DNA of 63,840 nt, the filler included, from Lenisia limosa (lineage: Eukaryota > Protista > Breviatea): assembly GCA_001655205.1 (NCBI GenBank). It is 11 parts of 11 records of this genome, joined end to end, with 100 filler letters (N's around TTAATTAATTAA, not from the genome) between each part and the next. Parts side by side here need not be neighbours in the genome. Positions count along the whole stretch, not along the records: positions 28,951 to 30,937 come from LPNZ01003989.1; 10 more parts are not named here. One strand, written 5' to 3'. Positions within the stretch are counted from its first letter, which is position 1. Each line of letters opens with the position of its first letter. The translations under genes were made by a program, and so were the position numbers. Shown piece by piece: positions 3,001-30,937 of the stretch. Under the pieces are notes generated by a model. The model did not search any database. It was not told where the DNA came from and saw nothing but the letters and a program-made list of their open reading frames with translations.

Positions 3001-5125
3001 TCTTTTCCCTGAAATTCAAGTTTCTCATTATCCTGGGTTGGTATTTAGGAATTCACTTTCGTAAAAATATAGACATAATTTCTCGACCACTCCTCGAAAA
3101 CTATCGATTATGGGCTAAAGTGAAGCACTTATTGTAGTCTTAAGCTCTTCCGAACAATATTGCATTGTCCAGCATACCTTCTCCTCAGGTACTGTGAAGT
3201 GGATGCTCACAGCAAAGACGGCTGTTTTTCGAGGTTGTGGCGAAGGGGGTGAAAACGAGTCTGACCCGATAGTCGCGCTGCGGTTGCGTATCCTGCTGGG
3301 GGGGTGAGACGGAGGAGTGGTGGTGAATGTCATCCTTATTATTGGCCATTGACACCCCCATTTGGTTTACCCCAATTNNNNNNNNNNNNNNNNNNNNNNN
3401 NNNNNNNNNNNNNNNNNNNNNNNNNNNNNNNNNNNNNNNNNNNNNNNNNNNNNNNNAATAAAATATGTTACTTTTGATGACAAGAAATTAGAGAATGGTG
3501 AATACTGAAGAAATAAAATCCAGCAGAAAGCAAACAAAAATAATAATAAGAACCCACCTTTTATTGGGGGTACGCACAAATTGTGGTGATTTCTCGTTTG
3601 CCATTTTCGAAAGAGCAGGGGAAGAGGGCACCCGGGGAACCGGCTTTGTTTTGGGCGAAACATTACCAGGAGAATCACCTGATTTACTTGGGGGTCCATG
3701 GACCACAAAAAGGTGAGAGAGCAGAAACCCTCCTTTAGAAGAGAGATAATGGACTTTGGATGACGAAGTCTTAATGGCTCCGGCGGCGGCACCCCAAACA
3801 CACTCCTCAATTTCTCGAGGACCAGAGAGAGCGGGGGCTTTGGTGGGGGTTGTGGGGTTCTGTTTGGTAATTCGTGAGGGTGCAATAGACATGACGCTCC
3901 TAACAAGGGATTTCTAGTCGATGCATATCATATTGATATCATGAGACATATCATAATAAATCATATCAATCCCACAGAGAGATGAGAAATAAAACAAGAT
4001 TATATCTGACCGAAGCCGTCCACACCATCAAGCATATATATACAGTGTATATTATAGTATCACATCATTCGCTGGCAACTCTGTGCACACAGCATTCTGT
4101 GTGCCTTTCCAACATACACATATAAATACACATACTATATCATAACAAAAAAGATCTTTTATGATACCCCCAGAAGTTATCCCCCCTATATAAGATCACC
4201 ACCCACCCTGAGAGGGGACGCCCTCAATCCGTTCCGGGTGATAGTACTGCCCCTGCGTCTTCGCGAAGCTGGAGTGCCGGGAGATGCGGCGCCGGGAGTC
4301 TTGGTTGTCGGACTGTTTGATGACCTCAGGGGAGTTCCGTCTAAAATCGTAAATAGGACAATCTATGAGAGATGATGTCAAACTCATTAATATGCGTTAC
4401 ACTGTTTATCTTGAGATGTGGTAAAGAGGTTTATCTAGTAATCAATGCGTTCAATATTTCCTTGTTGGCTTTCCAGCCAACTTTCAGAAATGGGGTGAAG
4501 CTCCGAATTGAAGTTTCCGTCATAGACAAGTACATGATTGCATGAACTGTCTTCCTGCCAAATCTGGTAGATAATTGAAAGTCTAAGAATAAAACGTAAT
4601 TGATAATGCAAACCTAGATAATTCCTGTTGGAGTATTTTTTATTTATTCATGGGAGATTGAGGGTAGGAGAGAACCAAAATTCAAAAAGGAGAGTGAAAT
4701 GGTAAAATCCAGCAGGAAGTAAAAATCAATTTATACCAAGAAATGGCCACACCCCTTCCTCACAAGAAACCCTAAGCAAGGACCCATACCCTACAAGGAT
4801 TCGAATGTCTTTCTCGGATAGTGTTGAGTAGGCTGCCGTGTCTCTATATGGCAGTTAGGAATGGATGACGTCCAATTCATAGATCATAATAGAACGAGTA
4901 TGCTCCTGCCATATCAATTCATAGATCATAATATAACGAGTATGCTCCTGCCATATCAATTATTTGAACTTGGCCCCAATAAAAAATACAGGGGAAATGC
5001 AATGAAATGAAGTGCAGAAGGTTATGGGGAAATGCTCATGAAGTGAAGTGCATTACAACAAACAATTTTGGGAACTCGATGACAGGCTTTGGCTTCTTGA
5101 AGAGAGAAATAAGCTTAGGGAACAT
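31..5125 (-). CDS. FNIP: Folliculin-interacting protein (FNIP1/2 / Lst4)-like, multi-exon
   Basis: Exons read by eye match FNIP blocks in order: MFPKLISLFKK (ATG 5125); SEKDIRILV; IEECVWGAAAGAIKTSSSKVHYLSSKGGFLLSHLF (cf. EMMFGSVAMSYKGSTLKIH..QLMLSKVF); LISTPRISPIF; LSRALSAFLMLHLGWV (cf. LPALITAVLTNHLAWV); TTIVVGSQE..VLLQYFLR (cf. RTVVVGK..LLYFLTYFIR). The 3' end is uncertain. Confidence 0.8.
475..613 (+). repeat. Element X copy (unclassified ~130-bp structured dispersed element), FNIP intron
   Basis: AAATGAGAAATAAAAAAAATAAGGTTGTATCTTGCCGAAGCCTTCCACACCATCACGC...TTTGCCTGACAACTCTG..AGCTTTCTGTGTGCC; the same blocks recur about 11 times in the window. Confidence 0.9.
3043..3131. mobile_element. 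Decayed hAT-type MITE copy
   Basis: TAGGAATTCACTTT...TTTCTCGA..CCTCGAAAACTATCGAT...AAAGTGAAGCACTTA resembles the intact copies at 22.8-25.8 kb; another relic lies at ~1095-1168. Confidence 0.55.
3982..4105 (+). repeat. Element X copy, FNIP intron
   Basis: ATGAGAAATAAAA..ATCTGACCGAAGCCGTCCACACCATCA...GGCAACTCTGT GCACACAG-CATT-CTGTGTGC (perfect 8-bp hairpin). Confidence 0.9.
4873..4961. repeat. 42-bp tandem duplication (x2) in intron
   Basis: CAATTCATAGATCATAATA(G/T)AACGAGTATGCTCCTGCCATAT twice, one mismatch. Confidence 0.95.
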
Positions 5126-10342: not shown

Positions 10343-13300
10343 ATGCTCCGCTTGTTTTTCCTTTTACTGGTAACAACTTTTGCCTTTGCCTCTGAACGTA
10401 AGTTCACTGAAGGATGCAAAATGGTAAGGGGTGGGGGGTTGGGTGCCTGGGAGCTTGAGGGAAATACCTGTTCCAATTTAATTGGCGATTCAACTAATCG
10501 CACCTCTTCCCTTCATCCTTATGTTTGTTTTTCTTTCTCATCATTATTCAAGGCTGATGGAGCCGAAGCGTTCTGCGAAGATGGGTTGTCACATTTGAGC
10601 CTTCCAGATGGTGGGTCAGTCACTTTGAAACTCGGTTTTCTGACCCGTCAATTCATTCTGAAATAGTGATTAGTAAAAATGTGTAGTCGATGATTTGTTA
10701 TTAAATACCAAAAAAAAAAGTTAAATTTAAACCTAAGAATTGGAGTTGCTCATAATTTGTCCTTTGATTCATTCTTGCACCCTTTCACTCTTAGATGATG
10801 TGGTGGAAGTTGTGCTTCTTCGTGCCCCCGTAGGCTACAGGACCAGGGGAACTTTTTTTTTTTTTTTAACCCAATTTAATATTTTTTATTTTTTCTACCA
10901 ACAGAGGAATTCTAGTTTAACCCGAAGTAGCTCTTCAAGGCCAAGCTCGGACCGGTTCTTGCCAAGTTCGACCTTTACCATGCTGGTGTTGGGTTCATTT
11001 CGAAGAAAACAGGCCGATCATATGACGTTGACTTTGGTAAGTAGAGCGGATGTAGATTTGCTGCATTTTTTATTATATGGGCTTCACTTTAGTATGATTT
11101 TCTCGATAAATCCTCTCTGAATTTAAAATTGAAAATCCCATTCCAGTTTCAACTGTGGAGCATTTTCACCCTTACCCTCCCTCTAGTGGCAGTGTTTGAT
11201 ATGGTGGCATCCGTGTACCCGAACTATACTTCTTCGGGACAAGAGCTTTGGTGCAATGATGGTCTGATTTTGAGAAGGGAAGAATACCGTTGTTGATCTA
11301 ATAGTCTTTTTTTTTTGTTTGTTATAGCGACTGATCTGGGCTTTGTTTTGCAGCTTTCAAGTTTGTACTGGTAGTTGCAGATTATTCGACTCGTGATTAT
11401 TTTTTGCAAATATTCTTCCTCGAAATCTTATTCACTTTACCCCCCCCCCCCTTCCNNNNNNNNNNNNNNNNNNNNNNNNNNNNNNNNNNNNNNNNNNNNN
11501 NNNNNNNNNNNNNNNNNNNNNNNNNNNNNNNNNGGGACTATTACGACCACGTAACTGCGCTGACTGGTGCACAATTCAATGAGCTCGAAGTACGATGGGT
11601 TTATCATATTATACATGTTCATCTTCTCCTAGTACTTTGAATAAAAGTATTATATGATCTATATCATGTAGCTATATGATTCTCTCTTATATGATAGTTT
11701 TGACCATGACGAGATTTCCCTTCTTGAAAATTGTTAGACTTTCCACGGTCAGTGTATGTTATATAATCTGTTGTTCTTCTACATTTTCCGATTCCTCAAT
11801 TCAGAGAAATCTTAAAACTAGTAATAAATAAATAGCGGTCATTTCGTCCGTTAATTGTATCTTATCCCCAGGTTTGGCTGAGGGACTTCAACAACACTTA
11901 CACCACTTATGAACTGTTCACTGTGAAGCAAGGCAAGTATGCTGTTCATTTGATCTGGCCGAATCACAAGCTTTTATTGGATACTTTACCTTTCTAGAGA
12001 TGCTCCAGTGGACATTATGGCACACACCTGCTTTGAGTTCGCTTGGCAGGTGTTCAACAAGATTTACGGTGTGATTTCTCAAAATAATTCAGTAATGTGG
12101 CAAATTTGATCGGCAGTTTACTGTAACATATATAATGGGCTGTGGACTTGTCTCTTCTTGGATGTCTTTTGACTCTTTCATCTCCTGCTCCGTCTCTGTA
12201 TCTGTTGGTTTGTTCTAAATGGCATGAAGTAGGGCCCGTGCAATTAATTGAACAATAAATTTCAAAATGCGAAGTCATATTGAATTAAACACAATTCCAG
12301 ACACATTGATTTCTAATTTTGTCAAGTTCTTCATTTATAGGATTAGGGGGTGGTCCATGTTGTCCCCACTCTTGTTGAAAATTGACAACCTAGATCTCGG
12401 AGGTCGATTCTCTCCTGATGAAGTTCTCAGCAAGAACGTGGTGAATCTATTTGCAAGCTCAATTGAGGTTTGACTGGCAATTTGTATTACATAGCTCTCC
12501 GTTTCACTGCTGATCCCCCTTTCAGAAAGTGGATATGACAATCACTGCCAACATCAAGGCTGTCGCTGAGTTCTATGCTGGTCTGGGGGGATAAAATGGT
12601 TTCCAAATAGTTGGGGGTTTGATTTTTGTTTTGCTTTGAAATTACTCTTTGCTTAATCAGCAATATTTTGACAAGTGTTATTAAAAAAATATGATATTAA
12701 AATAATAAATAAAGGAAAATGGATATGATGTTGAACTATTTCAGAAATGGCAAACCACAGTGGTTCACCTGAGGAATTCATTTCCTTCTACAGAGACCTA
12801 GTTGTAGGAATGGGTATTTTGATTTTTGTAGTATTTCCAGCACGTATGATGCCTATTCTCTTTTTTAAGGATTGTATAGTTTCTGTTTTTAATTCATCTT
12901 GTCCCATCCGCGTTTAACTAGATCCACCATTCAAATCGCTGTTCATTTCACAGGAGCTTCCAAAATACCTCTACCATGAGAAGGCCTACTACAAGCTCCA
13001 AGATATGGTGGCACCATTCATCAACTACGACTTCGCCAGGTCACCTCTTCCGGGTCAGCACATTAGCTTCTAGTGTTTACATTTTCGATTATTCTAAGTC
13101 TTCTTGTTCCTGCTCGAAGGAATTGTTGTTATTTATTCTTTCAAAACCTCTCAGTTCGGTAACTCCAGCCAGCTTATCAGAAATCAGGGGTATTTTATGG
13201 AACAATATAGCCTTTAAACAGTTCTACAAGAGCCTCACACGAGGAAACGTCTAAATATGTTAATCTAGCATATTGCAATTGATCTTATCACGTCTTATTT

Positions 13301-28950: not shown

Positions 28951-28972
28951 TTACCATTGTTGTGTGTAGTTA
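28951..28972 (-). other. attC-like site, R'' end only (truncated by scaffold end)
   Basis: Minus strand: stop TAA, then ATAACTACACACAAC-AATGGTAA; R''-like ...CAAC complementary to the R' at 29969-29956. Confidence 0.65.
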
Positions 28973-28973
28973 T

Positions 28974-29939
28974 TTAATTTTCAGTTCCATAATATTCATC
29001 ACATTCCGAACAAAGTCCAGTTGCGTTATCTATGTCCAATTCTTTGTCACAGCGTGCACAATTGTTTTTTCTATGAATTTTTTTATCTCTTATTTCCAAA
29101 TGGTCTAAAATTACAGAATCGGATATCTCAAGTTTACAAAATTGACATTTAAGTTTTTTTACTTCAAATCCAATTATAATTTCATCTTTTTCAAAGGGGT
29201 TATATTCTTTAATAGGTTGTAAATAGATAACAGCACTGTTTTCACAAGAGGGACATTTTGTTTCTTCTTTGTATGAAGTACTCAAGATGTTTTTAGTAAC
29301 TTCTTCTTTGTCTATAATGAAGCCTTTGTTTCCTTTTAATGACAACCAGGTTTCTTGATGTGCCTCAAGGATAAGTTTTAATTTCTTTTCTAAATCGGTT
29401 TGTAAAGTACTGGATAGCTTTGAAAGTTTAATGTGTGACCCATCAAAGAAATGTCCTTTTTTTATAGATAGTTCGGTTGAAATATCTTTTAAAAAAGGAT
29501 AAAAATCCCTCTGAAGAATTTCTTTCAAAGAATTAATGTCTAAACGATTCAGTTCGTGGTGCACAATTATATCTCTGGCATTTGAAATATTGAATAAAAG
29601 ATTTTTATTGTCATAGCAAACTTTTGAAATGTGTTGAGCTCTTAACAAGCTATTACGAAACGTTATTACATCTTCATTCGGATTAGTTGCTAATTCCTTT
29701 GAAGTTTTACTTTCAGCTATGATTTTTTCTTTATAAAGACATTGCAAAGAATGTTTGAAATCAGGTTCAATTAATATGTAAATGGGATTTATATCATATA
29801 AAATTCCTTTTAATAACCTTTCTAAACCCAAAGCGAAATTTAAAGTCAATTGAATTACTTGAAAGTCATCCAAATTCTTTTGAATTCCGATTGAAACCAT
29901 TTTAAAAAACTTTCCAGAGTCAGAGAGATATATATTCAT
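28974..29939 (-). CDS. Bacterial cassette ORF, 321 aa: HEPN-like N-terminus (RxxxxH) plus four C-terminal CxxC motifs
   Basis: Intronless, AT-rich; LGLERLLKGIL...NARDIIVH; CPSC, CQFC, CARC, CSEC. Confidence 0.85.
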   Translation of the reverse strand: MNIYLSDSGKFFKMVSIGIQKNLDDFQVIQLTLNFALGLERLLKGILYDINPIYILIEPDFKHSLQCLYKEKIIAESKTSKELATNPNEDVITFRNSLLRAQHISKVCYDNKNLLFNISNARDIIVHHELNRLDINSLKEILQRDFYPFLKDISTELSIKKGHFFDGSHIKLSKLSSTLQTDLEKKLKLILEAHQETWLSLKGNKGFIIDKEEVTKNILSTSYKEETKCPSCENSAVIYLQPIKEYNPFEKDEIIIGFEVKKLKCQFCKLEISDSVILDHLEIRDKKIHRKNNCARCDKELDIDNATGLCSECDEYYGTEN

Positions 29940-29955
29940 TCAATTCAGGTTTTTC

Positions 29956-30098
29956 TAATTACACACAACGTTTATGTATAAGATTAGTGGCGTGATTAAG
30001 CACCTAATTTAGTATAGAGATACTTGCCAGAGAAAATTCCGCAGGAATTTTCCAAGTAGGCTAAAACTAGCCATTAATTTTATACGGTGTTGGCAAAC
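29956..30098 (-). other. attC-like recombination site (complete, ~135 bp)
   Basis: Minus strand: GTTTGCCAAC-ACC-GTATAA-AATTAATGGC...GAAAATTCC-TGC-GGAATTTTC...GCCACTAAT-C-TTATAC-ATAAAC-GTTGTGTG; imperfect long palindrome between a stop codon and the next ATG. Confidence 0.85.
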
Positions 30099-30102
30099 GT
30101 AT

Positions 30103-30791
30103 TTATAATACAAATTCCAACACTATTAACTTTCTAACGAGTTCGTTATTCAAGTCAGCTTCTTCTATAAATAACTCATTAATTTGTTCTTTATCAAAAA
30201 TATTTTTTCGGTCAGAAAATCGTTCAAAAAATCCGCCAAATTTTCTAATATAGTCGGTCGCTTGTCTGTACTTTCCATTATAATAATTCACGTATCTTAA
30301 ATTCATTNNNNNNNNNNNNNNNNNNNNNNNNNNNNNNNNNNNNNNNNNNNNNNNNNNNNNNNNNNNNNNNNNCTGAACATCAAATCCTTTTTTCTTAATT
30401 TTATGTAAGGTCTATCAACATCAAGAAATATTAAAGAATCTTCTTCTACCTTGTCGTAGGAACTATTTGGTAAAATCCAAACAGAGTCAGGATGATAGTA
30501 CATTTCCTTTTTTAATTCACTTGCCTCAAATCTGTTAGCAATCTCTTTAGGTTTAGGCAACCAATTTTCGGTTGTTCCGTTTTTATAGTCAATTAAGAAT
30601 TTCCTGTAAGATTCGTTTAGTTTAGAATTTGGATACTGTTTTTTCAGAAAGTCATTTTCAAAATCGTTTACAAGTAAAGTCAAAGTTTTACTGTTTTCCT
30701 CGCCTAAAACTTTCTCAAATTCTGTTATTTCTTTTTCGTTTGAACAACTAAAAGTCAGAAGTACAATTATGAATAGATTGATGAATTTCAT
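30103..30791 (-). CDS. Bacteroidota-type lipoprotein cassette ORF (spans internal N gap 30308-30372)
   Basis: MKFINLFIIVLLTFSC (lipobox Cys16) SNEKE...; the C-terminal part ..RKLIVLEFVL* (30306-30103) is inferred to be the same gene. The ORF-track start at 30914 runs through the attC-like site and is spurious. Confidence 0.8.
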
Positions 30792-30804
30792 TTTTTGGTC
30801 ATAT

Positions 30805-30937
30805 GTTTGCCAACGGTTTGTGTAAGGATAGTTGCGTGTGCAAGCAACTAACTTACTAAAAAAGGAACGAACCAGAGGAAAATCCGTAGGATTTTCCGAG
30901 TAGGCTAGAACCAAGCAATTTTTTTTATACGATGTGC
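30805..30937 (-). other. attC-like recombination site (R'' end cut by scaffold end)
   Basis: Minus strand: GTATAA..TTGC...GGAAAATCC-TAC-GGATTTTCC...GCAA..TTACAC-AAACC-GTTGGCAAAC, then ATG 14 nt later; shares the central AGTAGGCTA + palindrome block with the 29956-30098 site. Confidence 0.8.

Follow-up and report, generated by a model that had tools for sequence, protein, structure and literature searches.

An integron-like gene cassette array, probably of marine Flavobacteriaceae, in a fragment of the Lenisia limosa genome assembly

Results and Discussion

Two Cassettes with Matched Ends

Positions 28951-30937 (record LPNZ01003989.1) of a 63,840-nt stretch of the Lenisia limosa assembly GCA_001655205.1 very probably belong to an integron-like cassette array, worked by recombination at folded sites, on the chromosome of a marine bacterium of the Flavobacteriaceae. 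We call the whole stretch the window and the part studied here the fragment. On its minus strand, the fragment holds two compact, promoterless open reading frames (ORFs) separated by imperfect palindromes of ~125 nt, in the order insertion sequence (IS) end, site A, ORF1, site B, ORF2, start of site C, and IS end (Table 1). The case draws on this anatomy, a pairing rule for cassette ends, covariation and strand bias within the sites, a linked recombinase and attI-like junction, and natural junction polymorphisms.

Each ORF is enclosed by its own 14-nt inverted pair, recovered by an inverted-repeat search with 13 of 14 positions matching. The boxes of a pair are termed R' at the beginning of a cassette and R'' at its end. 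The two flanks of site B, 125 nt long when AAC and GTT are counted, agree with each other at AAC/GTT only. Sites A and B align over their full length and have the apical hairpin GGAAAAT(T)CC-n3-GG(A)ATTTTCC in common. A preliminary description of this DNA, made from the sequence alone, had proposed a site-ORF-site-ORF-site order. The ORFs and site B bear this out, site A proves to be cut by an IS at its 5' end, and the third site amounts to its R'' box plus 1-5 nt. Its other anatomical claims have held: an inverted core pair for each ORF, both found where it had placed them; middle-site halves that do not match beyond AAC/GTT; and a conserved extra internal hairpin.

Is this bracketing a general property of such sites? 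In other genomes, we compared the 14 nt from the GTT of one site with the 14 nt ending at the next AAC for 179 pairs of consecutive sites. Consecutive pairs were complementary at a mean of 7.9 of 11 positions, compared with 4.24 for the flanks of single sites and 4.22 for random pairs; in 105 of the 179, complementarity extended to 9 or more of the 11 flank positions. Chance falls far short of explaining this, and the pairing in these 105 cognate cassettes is cassette-specific. The R box is highly regular among them: GTT/AAC is invariant at positions 1-3; positions 4-10 vary freely while remaining ~100% Watson-Crick paired (a "barcode"); position 11 is an A opposite C in 105/105, a T.G wobble when read on the strand antisense to the ORFs (here the bottom strand); positions 12-14 are paired; and no more pairing is found from position 15 onward. 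The single mismatch in the ORF1 pair is this invariant position 11. Cognate cassettes have a median length of 672 nt and a coding fraction of 0.89, with the ATG 28 nt past GTT, the stop codon 15 nt ahead of AAC, and most ORFs (83/92) co-oriented with the sites.

Arrays across Flavobacteriaceae

How widespread is the site? A scan for a 16-nt core in one genome per species gave ~80 true copies, all from Flavobacteriaceae, from which a profile was built for nhmmer. Matches to the 16-mer beyond this family (archaea, Streptomyces, Firmicutes, and others) were rejected as bare chance 16-mers lacking the site. The profile finds 288 sites in 92 loci when six copies of the fragment's own contig are counted and, excluding these, ~280 sites in ~86 loci from 30 Flavobacteriaceae genera, including Polaribacter, Dokdonia, Psychroserpens, Thalassobellus, Mariniflexile, Algibacter, Maribacter, Winogradskyella, Aequorivita, and Tamlana. 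Near-identical counterparts of site A occur in Dokdonia, Mangrovimonas, and Gaetbulibacter. The sites are sharply delimited, with AAC at the left edge in 252/282 and GTT at the right edge in 257/282, and the AAC-to-GTT length is 123-127 nt among 221 distinct sites. Their sequence is itself strongly conserved, as in Vibrio cholerae repeats (VCRs) and unlike attC sites generally.

All sites of a locus have one orientation, with a maximum of 9 per 8 kb, and they form long co-oriented arrays. Psychroserpens algicola has 24 sites over 24 contiguous kb (three adjacent 8-kb blocks), followed by 7 further same-strand sites in a block 24 kb beyond, and the array of Thalassobellus sediminis extends at least 14 kb from its recombinase gene. 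Short site variants that lack ~74 central nt (the apical hairpin region) and keep the R and L boxes were seen in two loci (L017 ~306-378 and L025 ~240-366; numbers with L are our labels for loci and contigs), and the same short form of the fragment's own site, 29994-30069, appeared in runs X4 and X6.

Probable Selection on the Fold of the Bottom Strand

What structure has been conserved in the sites? We aligned 64 diverse sites as bottom strands. A 16-bp L stem adjoins the R box, with compensatory changes at 12 of its 16 pairs. On the bottom strand 98.1% of L-stem cells are paired, compared with 82.7% in column shuffles (0/500 reach the observed value), and sliding the partners by 1-3 columns leaves only 29-55% paired. 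Between the R and L stems lies an asymmetric 6 x 3 nt loop in which unpaired bases are concentrated. The apical hairpin is conserved across site subfamilies, with A-T to G-C changes on both arms.

Three G.U pairs are conserved in the alignment (64/64, 59/64 at columns 17/126, and 20/64), and wobbles on the bottom strand are strongly one-sided, with ~98 G.U cells and 2 A.C cells even before the 59/64 pair is added. Because G.U wobbles are mismatches on the top strand, it is the fold of the gene-antisense strand on which selection seems to have acted, in favor of single-stranded DNA over mRNA. Folding calculations point the same way. The site B bottom strand forms a long imperfect hairpin (z = -4.0). 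Rebuilt as a circle, the ORF1 cassette gives -29.0 kcal/mol on the bottom strand and -23.8 on the top, and its R stem closes fully on the bottom strand over ~16 bp, consisting of the 14-bp R box and two wobble pairs; the arrayed form of its site gives -20.8 (bottom) and -18.2 kcal/mol (top). Comparative and folding evidence thus both favor the bottom strand as the one that would be folded and recombined.

These observations already contradict an explanation in which REP-like intergenic repeats, terminators, or regulatory RNA structures, none of them mobile, would account for the sites. Such elements would also be intergenic, palindromic, repeated, and stably folded, as the sites are. The 14-bp flanks are cassette-specific, however, and an mRNA structure is disfavored by a wobble bias that lies on the gene-antisense strand; a terminator scan found no terminator-like sites on the gene strand, and Rfam searched at a permissive threshold returned chance matches only. 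With a recombinase and attI-like junction linked to co-oriented arrays, and with breakpoints at GTT (both described below), we regard this explanation as scarcely credible. Scans for sigma-70 promoters and terminators gave no excess over shuffles, the models used not covering Bacteroidota promoters, and a tRNA scan found none.

A Recombinase and attI-Like Junction Head the Arrays

What lies at the head of the arrays? A tyrosine recombinase of ~388 aa with conserved catalytic residues is encoded immediately upstream, oriented the same way as the cassettes, and homologues of ~387 aa with 58-84% identity are found throughout Flavobacteriaceae. Recombinase-headed arrays were seen at 10 loci, with 45-80 nt between the recombinase stop codon and the first cassette, a spacing found in Thalassobellus, Mariniflexile, Aequorivita, Lacinutrix, Polaribacter, Algibacter, Bizionia, Winogradskyella, and Patiriisocius. 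At seven homologue loci, small co-oriented ORFs begin 50-80 nt past the stop codon, or the contig ends, and profile-positive sites follow wherever the sequence extends.

Beyond the recombinase gene there is a conserved attI-like junction, TATATAAC-NN|GTT. In the main family (7 loci) it comprises two TTTACrGGATAw direct repeats, then ..wTATATAAC-rA|GTT and the barcode, an arrangement that recalls the direct repeats and simple site of attI1. Three further loci have more divergent versions, and relatives at 47% and 40% recombinase identity have the same junction. The TTTACrGGATAw repeats fall within the last ~100 nt of the recombinase gene (L127-L133, ~11090-11200), the second inside an inverted repeat ATATCC..GGGATAT; the TACGGATTTT of the site's apical hairpin loosely resembles them. 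That the first cassette at attI is followed by its site supports the integron convention, in which the site belongs to the 3' end of the cassette; whether the site travels with the upstream or downstream ORF could also be compared among homologous cassettes, for which only two nucleotide-level pairs were available. In the Mariniflexile jejuense array, which is headed by a 32%-identical recombinase paralogue, the first cassette beyond attI lacks an ORF and is full of GCGGAA(A/T)TT-type repeats (L073:4290-4575, minus strand).

Natural sequences are polymorphic at these points. Contigs from two metagenome samples (L135 and L136) carry identical recombinase genes and are 100% identical over 1300 nt up to ..ATATAACAAGTT (also given as ..GATATAACAAGTT); past the GTT of the junction only 28/116 positions match, so that one attI is followed by two different first cassettes. 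Between Thalassobellus species and within other pairs, blocks of 97-99% identity end 3-10 nt beyond GTT, and metagenome contigs part exactly at GTT or AAC, with site segments 5-10x deeper than cassettes. A pair of Thalassobellus citreus contigs (L091:1-300 and L092:1-300) shares 286 nt of cassette end and site at 99% identity and splits 3 nt after GTT, reflecting either a duplicated cassette or a culture heterogeneous in cassette order.

Is the recombinase an integron integrase? It scores 222 bits on NF040815 (XerA / integron integrase; cutoff 220), 210 bits in two stretches on TIGR02249 (integron integrase; cutoff 265), and ~180 bits on the XerC and XerD models. Opposite residues 179-242 of IntI4 (PDB 2A3V; 64 aa) it has only residues 175-201 (27 aa), and a structural model (mean pLDDT 79.5) shows only a loop in place of the IntI additional domain. 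In this model a Xer/IntI core follows a confident N-terminal domain of ~75 residues with a beta-beta-alpha-beta-beta-alpha order. XerA is the best fold match and IntI4 the next, and full-length lambda integrase aligns with the recombinase over ~350 columns. This last alignment suggests that the extra N-terminal domain may be an arm-type DNA-binding domain.

One alternative is an ordinary integron in a new host, its recombinase a divergent IntI and its sites ordinary attC sites within reach of standard tools. Integrons, among them the known "inverted integrase" type, have this same layout of recombinase, attI, and cassettes that share one orientation and bear AAC...GTT palindromes; the TIGR02249 score exceeds those of XerC and XerD; IntI4 is among the best sequence and fold matches; NCBI names some members of the family "site-specific tyrosine recombinase/integron integrase"; and an "integron-like" subgroup of tyrosine recombinases is said to conserve the insertion incompletely. 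Yet the IntI-specific region is absent, the TIGR02249 match is split and falls under its curated cutoff, and the extra N-terminal domain is no part of that picture. The additional domain (Messier and Roy 2001) was reported to be necessary for activity, and IntegronFinder uses it (intI_Cterm) to define IntI. IntegronFinder surveys of complete genomes list only In0 elements and one Salinibacter integron for Bacteroidetes and no Flavobacteriaceae integrons, even though such arrays are present in complete genomes of that family (L022, L079, L111, L127, and L128). We consider an ordinary integron unlikely.

Could the recombinase instead be the host's chromosome-dimer resolvase, a single Xer with dif beside its gene like XerS or XerH, which cassettes exploit by accumulating at dif? 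The gene is single, conserved across genera, and often located at rpsO-pnp, and XerA proteins are its best matches. CTX phage, moreover, integrates via XerC/D as a folded single strand, a Xer substrate that resembles the site folding proposed here. However, the gene has other neighbors in Bizionia, Winogradskyella, and Patiriisocius, and a paralogue heads the Mariniflexile jejuense array. Its positions at 52%, 15%, and 5% of chromosome length in complete genomes point to no single terminus (GC skew around two recombinase loci tracks gene orientation and is uninformative on the replication terminus). Tamlana has sites at two distant loci, and 125-nt hairpins differ from a 28-bp dif. This makes a co-opted dimer resolvase quite improbable.

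Proposed Mechanism and Points against It

How might the system work? In the reading we prefer, that of an integron-like array recombining through folded sites, a cassette would consist of one compact promoterless ORF with a recombination site of ~125 nt at its 3' end. When a cassette is a free circle, complementarity would link the 14 nt preceding AAC with the 14 nt following GTT, and the bottom strand could then fold into a long hairpin: a 14-bp R stem (the cassette barcode, with the invariant G.T), the 6 x 3 loop, the 16-bp L stem, where two further G.T wobbles are conserved, and an end portion bearing the apical hairpin. The recombinase would exchange strands at or beside GTT, between the folded site and an attI that is double-stranded and lies at the 3' end of the recombinase gene. 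In consequence, the R'' in an arrayed site would come from the site's own cassette and the R' from the cassette that follows. In the fragment, an IS1182-family element has inserted itself into the sites on either side of the two cassettes. We infer from the sequences that a folded single strand is the substrate, which bond is cleaved, and that the recombinase is the catalyst.

Several observations weigh against this mechanism. There is no recombinase in the fragment or in its 2.3-kb contig, and the link is made through homologous sites in other genomes. The region that the recombinase lacks relative to IntI4 is the IntI additional domain near patch III. The recombinase's family is very large, with 2656 clusters at E < 1e-30 (the best 150 all with the N-terminal part), and its other members may serve other purposes; a search with representatives returned members of the same large family only. 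Classical attC sites have single-base extrahelical bulges, whereas the L stem of the aligned sites showed none. In the arrayed form, the R box has a 7-nt mismatch beside the presumed cleavage site, which would make arrayed sites poor folded substrates. Finally, 74 of the 179 consecutive-site pairs are non-cognate, mostly over long intervals; these cases probably represent missed sites or several genes per interval.

The preliminary description had suggested independently mobile, shuffled cassettes of a poorly characterized Bacteroidota integron "or analogous system", and had proposed checking a linked tyrosine recombinase for the IntI-specific insertion. Mobility and shuffling are supported by the junctions described above. 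The four observations it had named as fatal to this idea (solitary REP-like repeats, lack of cassette-specific R''/R' pairing, lack of shuffling, and lack of a linked recombinase) are each contradicted by the data. With the insertion absent, "analogous system" fits better than "integron". A broader proposal, on which we are evenly divided, is that this is a separate integron lineage across marine Flavobacteriaceae, and probably more Bacteroidota, with folded sites and a Xer-like enzyme that lacks the IntI domain. In such a lineage G.T wobbles might replace extrahelical bases in strand choice, the N-terminal arm-type domain and apical hairpin might aid recognition, and the arrays would go unseen by IntegronFinder surveys.

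An IS1182-Family Element Targets the Sites

The fragment is bounded on both sides by ends of the same kind of IS. Upstream of site A, contig L001 continues with ..TTGTGCAACAGGCACA and the N-terminus of a divergent transposase. Past the R'' box of ORF2, L001 and L004 read AAC-A, then ATGGTAACCGTTGCACAAC.. and a terminator; this extension (TAACCGTTGCACAAC..) is 86% identical to the left end of the IS in L126. Both ends beside the fragment are 84-86% identical to the L126 copy, whose transposase scores 333 bits on NF033551 IS1182 (DDE; cutoff 270), and the right end beside site A also adjoins sites in L101, L119, and L126. In every case (L001 twice, L081, L101, L119, and L126) the IS lies directly after "AAC A" of a site, in the same orientation and with its transposase antisense to the cassettes; no clear target duplication was seen at the insertions examined. 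Because two copies flank the fragment's cassettes, every assembly of the region stops at ~2.1-2.3 kb. An outer pair, GTTGTGCAAC / GTTGCACAAC, considered as a third nested bracket, was rejected, as it consists of the two ends of the IS copies.

The motif GTTGYRCAAC, similar in appearance to R' and R'' boxes fused together, is present at both IS ends. Insertion at a fixed position and orientation in a cassette recombination site is also known from IS1111-attC elements and group IIC-attC introns; the element here, however, is neither of the IS110 family nor an intron but an IS1182-family DDE transposon. In two further genomes, another foreign end (..AAACTTAAG[C/A]) adjoins the same site position, at L105:1-60 and L107 (minus, ~1470-1586), on contigs too short for its identification.

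Cassette Proteins and Other Features of the Fragment

What do the cassettes encode? Contigs L001-L003, from Tara and other marine metagenomes, span the entire fragment at 100% identity, including both flanks of the assembly gap within ORF1. In one run, from a cultured organism that may be the source, the stretch lies on a single contig of 2052 nt. The real gap sequence is 22 bases longer than its filler, so that the two halves share one frame and ORF1 is a continuous protein. Homologues of ORF1 are present as cassette proteins in arrays of Thalassobellus, Confluentibacter, and Mariniflexile, and its lipoprotein-type signal, LLTFSC, in the gap-restored ORF agrees with the lipoprotein first proposed. 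Six public contigs code for ORF2. A seawater metagenome contig carries the ORF2 cassette at 95% identity, with homology stopping at the cassette limits 28963 and 29967; site C is intact behind it, as AAC-AATGGCTATAAGTAATTGCTTG (seen as a loose end in run X6). Neither ORF was assigned a family by Pfam, PADLOC, or the protein atlas, whose nearest clusters to ORF2 are unnamed hypothetical proteins; the earlier "HEPN-like" label for ORF2, for which the RDIIVH motif was the sole basis, stays a guess.

Table 1. Positions of features in the fragment (coordinates of the window) and of IS copies in related contigs
Feature	Position	Strand	Remarks
Site C start	28951-28958	minus	A or possibly AATGG, then IS left end (ATGG/TAACC...)
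R'' box, cassette 2	28959-28972	minus	TAACTACACACAAC; pair I12
ORF2	28974-29939	minus	321 aa; helical N-terminal part with RDIIVH; C-terminal run of CxxC zinc-ribbon motifs
R' box, cassette 2	29956-29969	minus	GTTGTGTGTAATTA; pair I12
Inverted pair I12 (ORF2 cassette)	28959-28972 with 29956-29969		13/14
Site B core	29970-30088	minus	attC-like, complete, between AAC and GTT; nhmmer profile positions 5-157
Apical hairpin of site B	30032-30052		GAAAATTCC-GCA-GGAATTTTC; sequence reading and folding
R'' box, cassette 1	30089-30102	minus	ATACGTTTGCCAAC; pair I25
ORF1	30103-30791	minus	putative lipoprotein, 236 aa; uninterrupted in L001:375-1085
Assembly gap in ORF1	30308-30372		65 N standing for 87 real bases; blastn against L001-L003
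R' box, cassette 1	30801-30814	minus	GTTGGCAAACATAT; ORF1 cassette begins here
Inverted pair I25 (ORF1 cassette)	30089-30102 with 30801-30814		13/14
Site A core	30815-30932	minus	attC-like; R'' box and first spacer base lost to IS; nhmmer profile positions 18-156
Apical hairpin of site A	30877-30897		GGAAAATCC-GTA-GGATTTTCC; sequence reading and folding
Right end of IS1182-family element	30933-30937	minus	last 5 nt (GCACA); interrupts site A
IS copies in related contigs	L001:1-235 and 2233-2287; L081 ~6047; L101 3056 and 4794-4810; L119; L126 3965-5682

The proteins of the cassettes in other genomes are heterogeneous, including methyltransferases, DJ-1/PfpI, an NTF2-fold immunity protein, TIR, DUF4145, and many without a family. 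Some arrays have defense-type genes at their head: in a Winogradskyella, SMODS and SLATT_4 make up the first cassette (L132:11249-12668), and in a Bizionia a block of MmeI-like restriction-modification genes is located downstream (L131:13692-20289). A two-gene cassette, encoding a short-chain dehydrogenase and an AraC-type regulator, is common to Winogradskyella costae (L096:3855-6035) and a Leeuwenhoekiella (L101:1346-3019), where its downstream site is cut by the IS.

Relation to Known Systems and Significance

How does the system compare with those already known? It is closest in anatomy to the Vibrio super-integron with its VCR-type attC sites. Both have long chromosomal arrays of compact, promoterless, co-oriented cassettes; long (~125 nt) and mutually very similar sites; AAC...GTT core boxes with chimeric R boxes in the array and an apparent bottom-strand bias; heterogeneous and mostly unknown cassette proteins, some of them defense-like here (TIR and SMODS with SLATT); and site-targeting insertion sequences. 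In contrast to the Vibrio system, the recombinase here lacks the IntI additional domain, has an extra N-terminal domain, and points in the same direction as the cassettes, attI lying at its 3' end; the R box has 14 bp, including an invariant G.T wobble, in place of 7 bp; no single-base extrahelical bulges are seen in the L stem; and site subfamilies are common to 30 genera and not species-specific. In "inverted integrase" integrons (e.g., Treponema denticola) the integrase is likewise transcribed toward the array, but the IntI-specific region, missing from the recombinase family here, is present and the integrons are found by IntegronFinder.

Xer systems offer the other comparison. In the group of archaeal XerA and bacterial XerC-XerD with dif, XerA proteins are the best sequence and fold matches of the recombinase core. 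Acinetobacter pdif modules, too, are genes bracketed by recombination sites. However, dif and pdif are 28-bp double-stranded sites with two 11-bp arms, and pdif orientation alternates, whereas the sites here are hairpins of 123-127 nt, all direct, with a dedicated attI beside the recombinase gene. Judged on structure, the arrays would be a functional match to a sedentary chromosomal integron on every point tested, with the IntI domain, a defining feature, missing. In a full-text search of open-access papers and preprints, no account of Flavobacteriaceae cassette arrays turned up.

The working definition of an integron relies on the special domain of the integrase and one attC covariance model, and integrons so defined are almost absent from Bacteroidota. 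If the system works as its anatomy indicates, cassettes can be captured via folded single-strand sites without the IntI domain, which bears on the origin of integrons from Xer recombinases. Mechanistic studies and synthetic biology would also gain a second set of structure-specific recombination sites, independent of the first. The arrays, reaching tens of kilobases, would supply a recurrent cause of assembly breaks in Flavobacteriaceae genomes and metagenome-assembled genomes, and would mean that a dominant group among marine polysaccharide degraders owns large shared pools of exchangeable genes.

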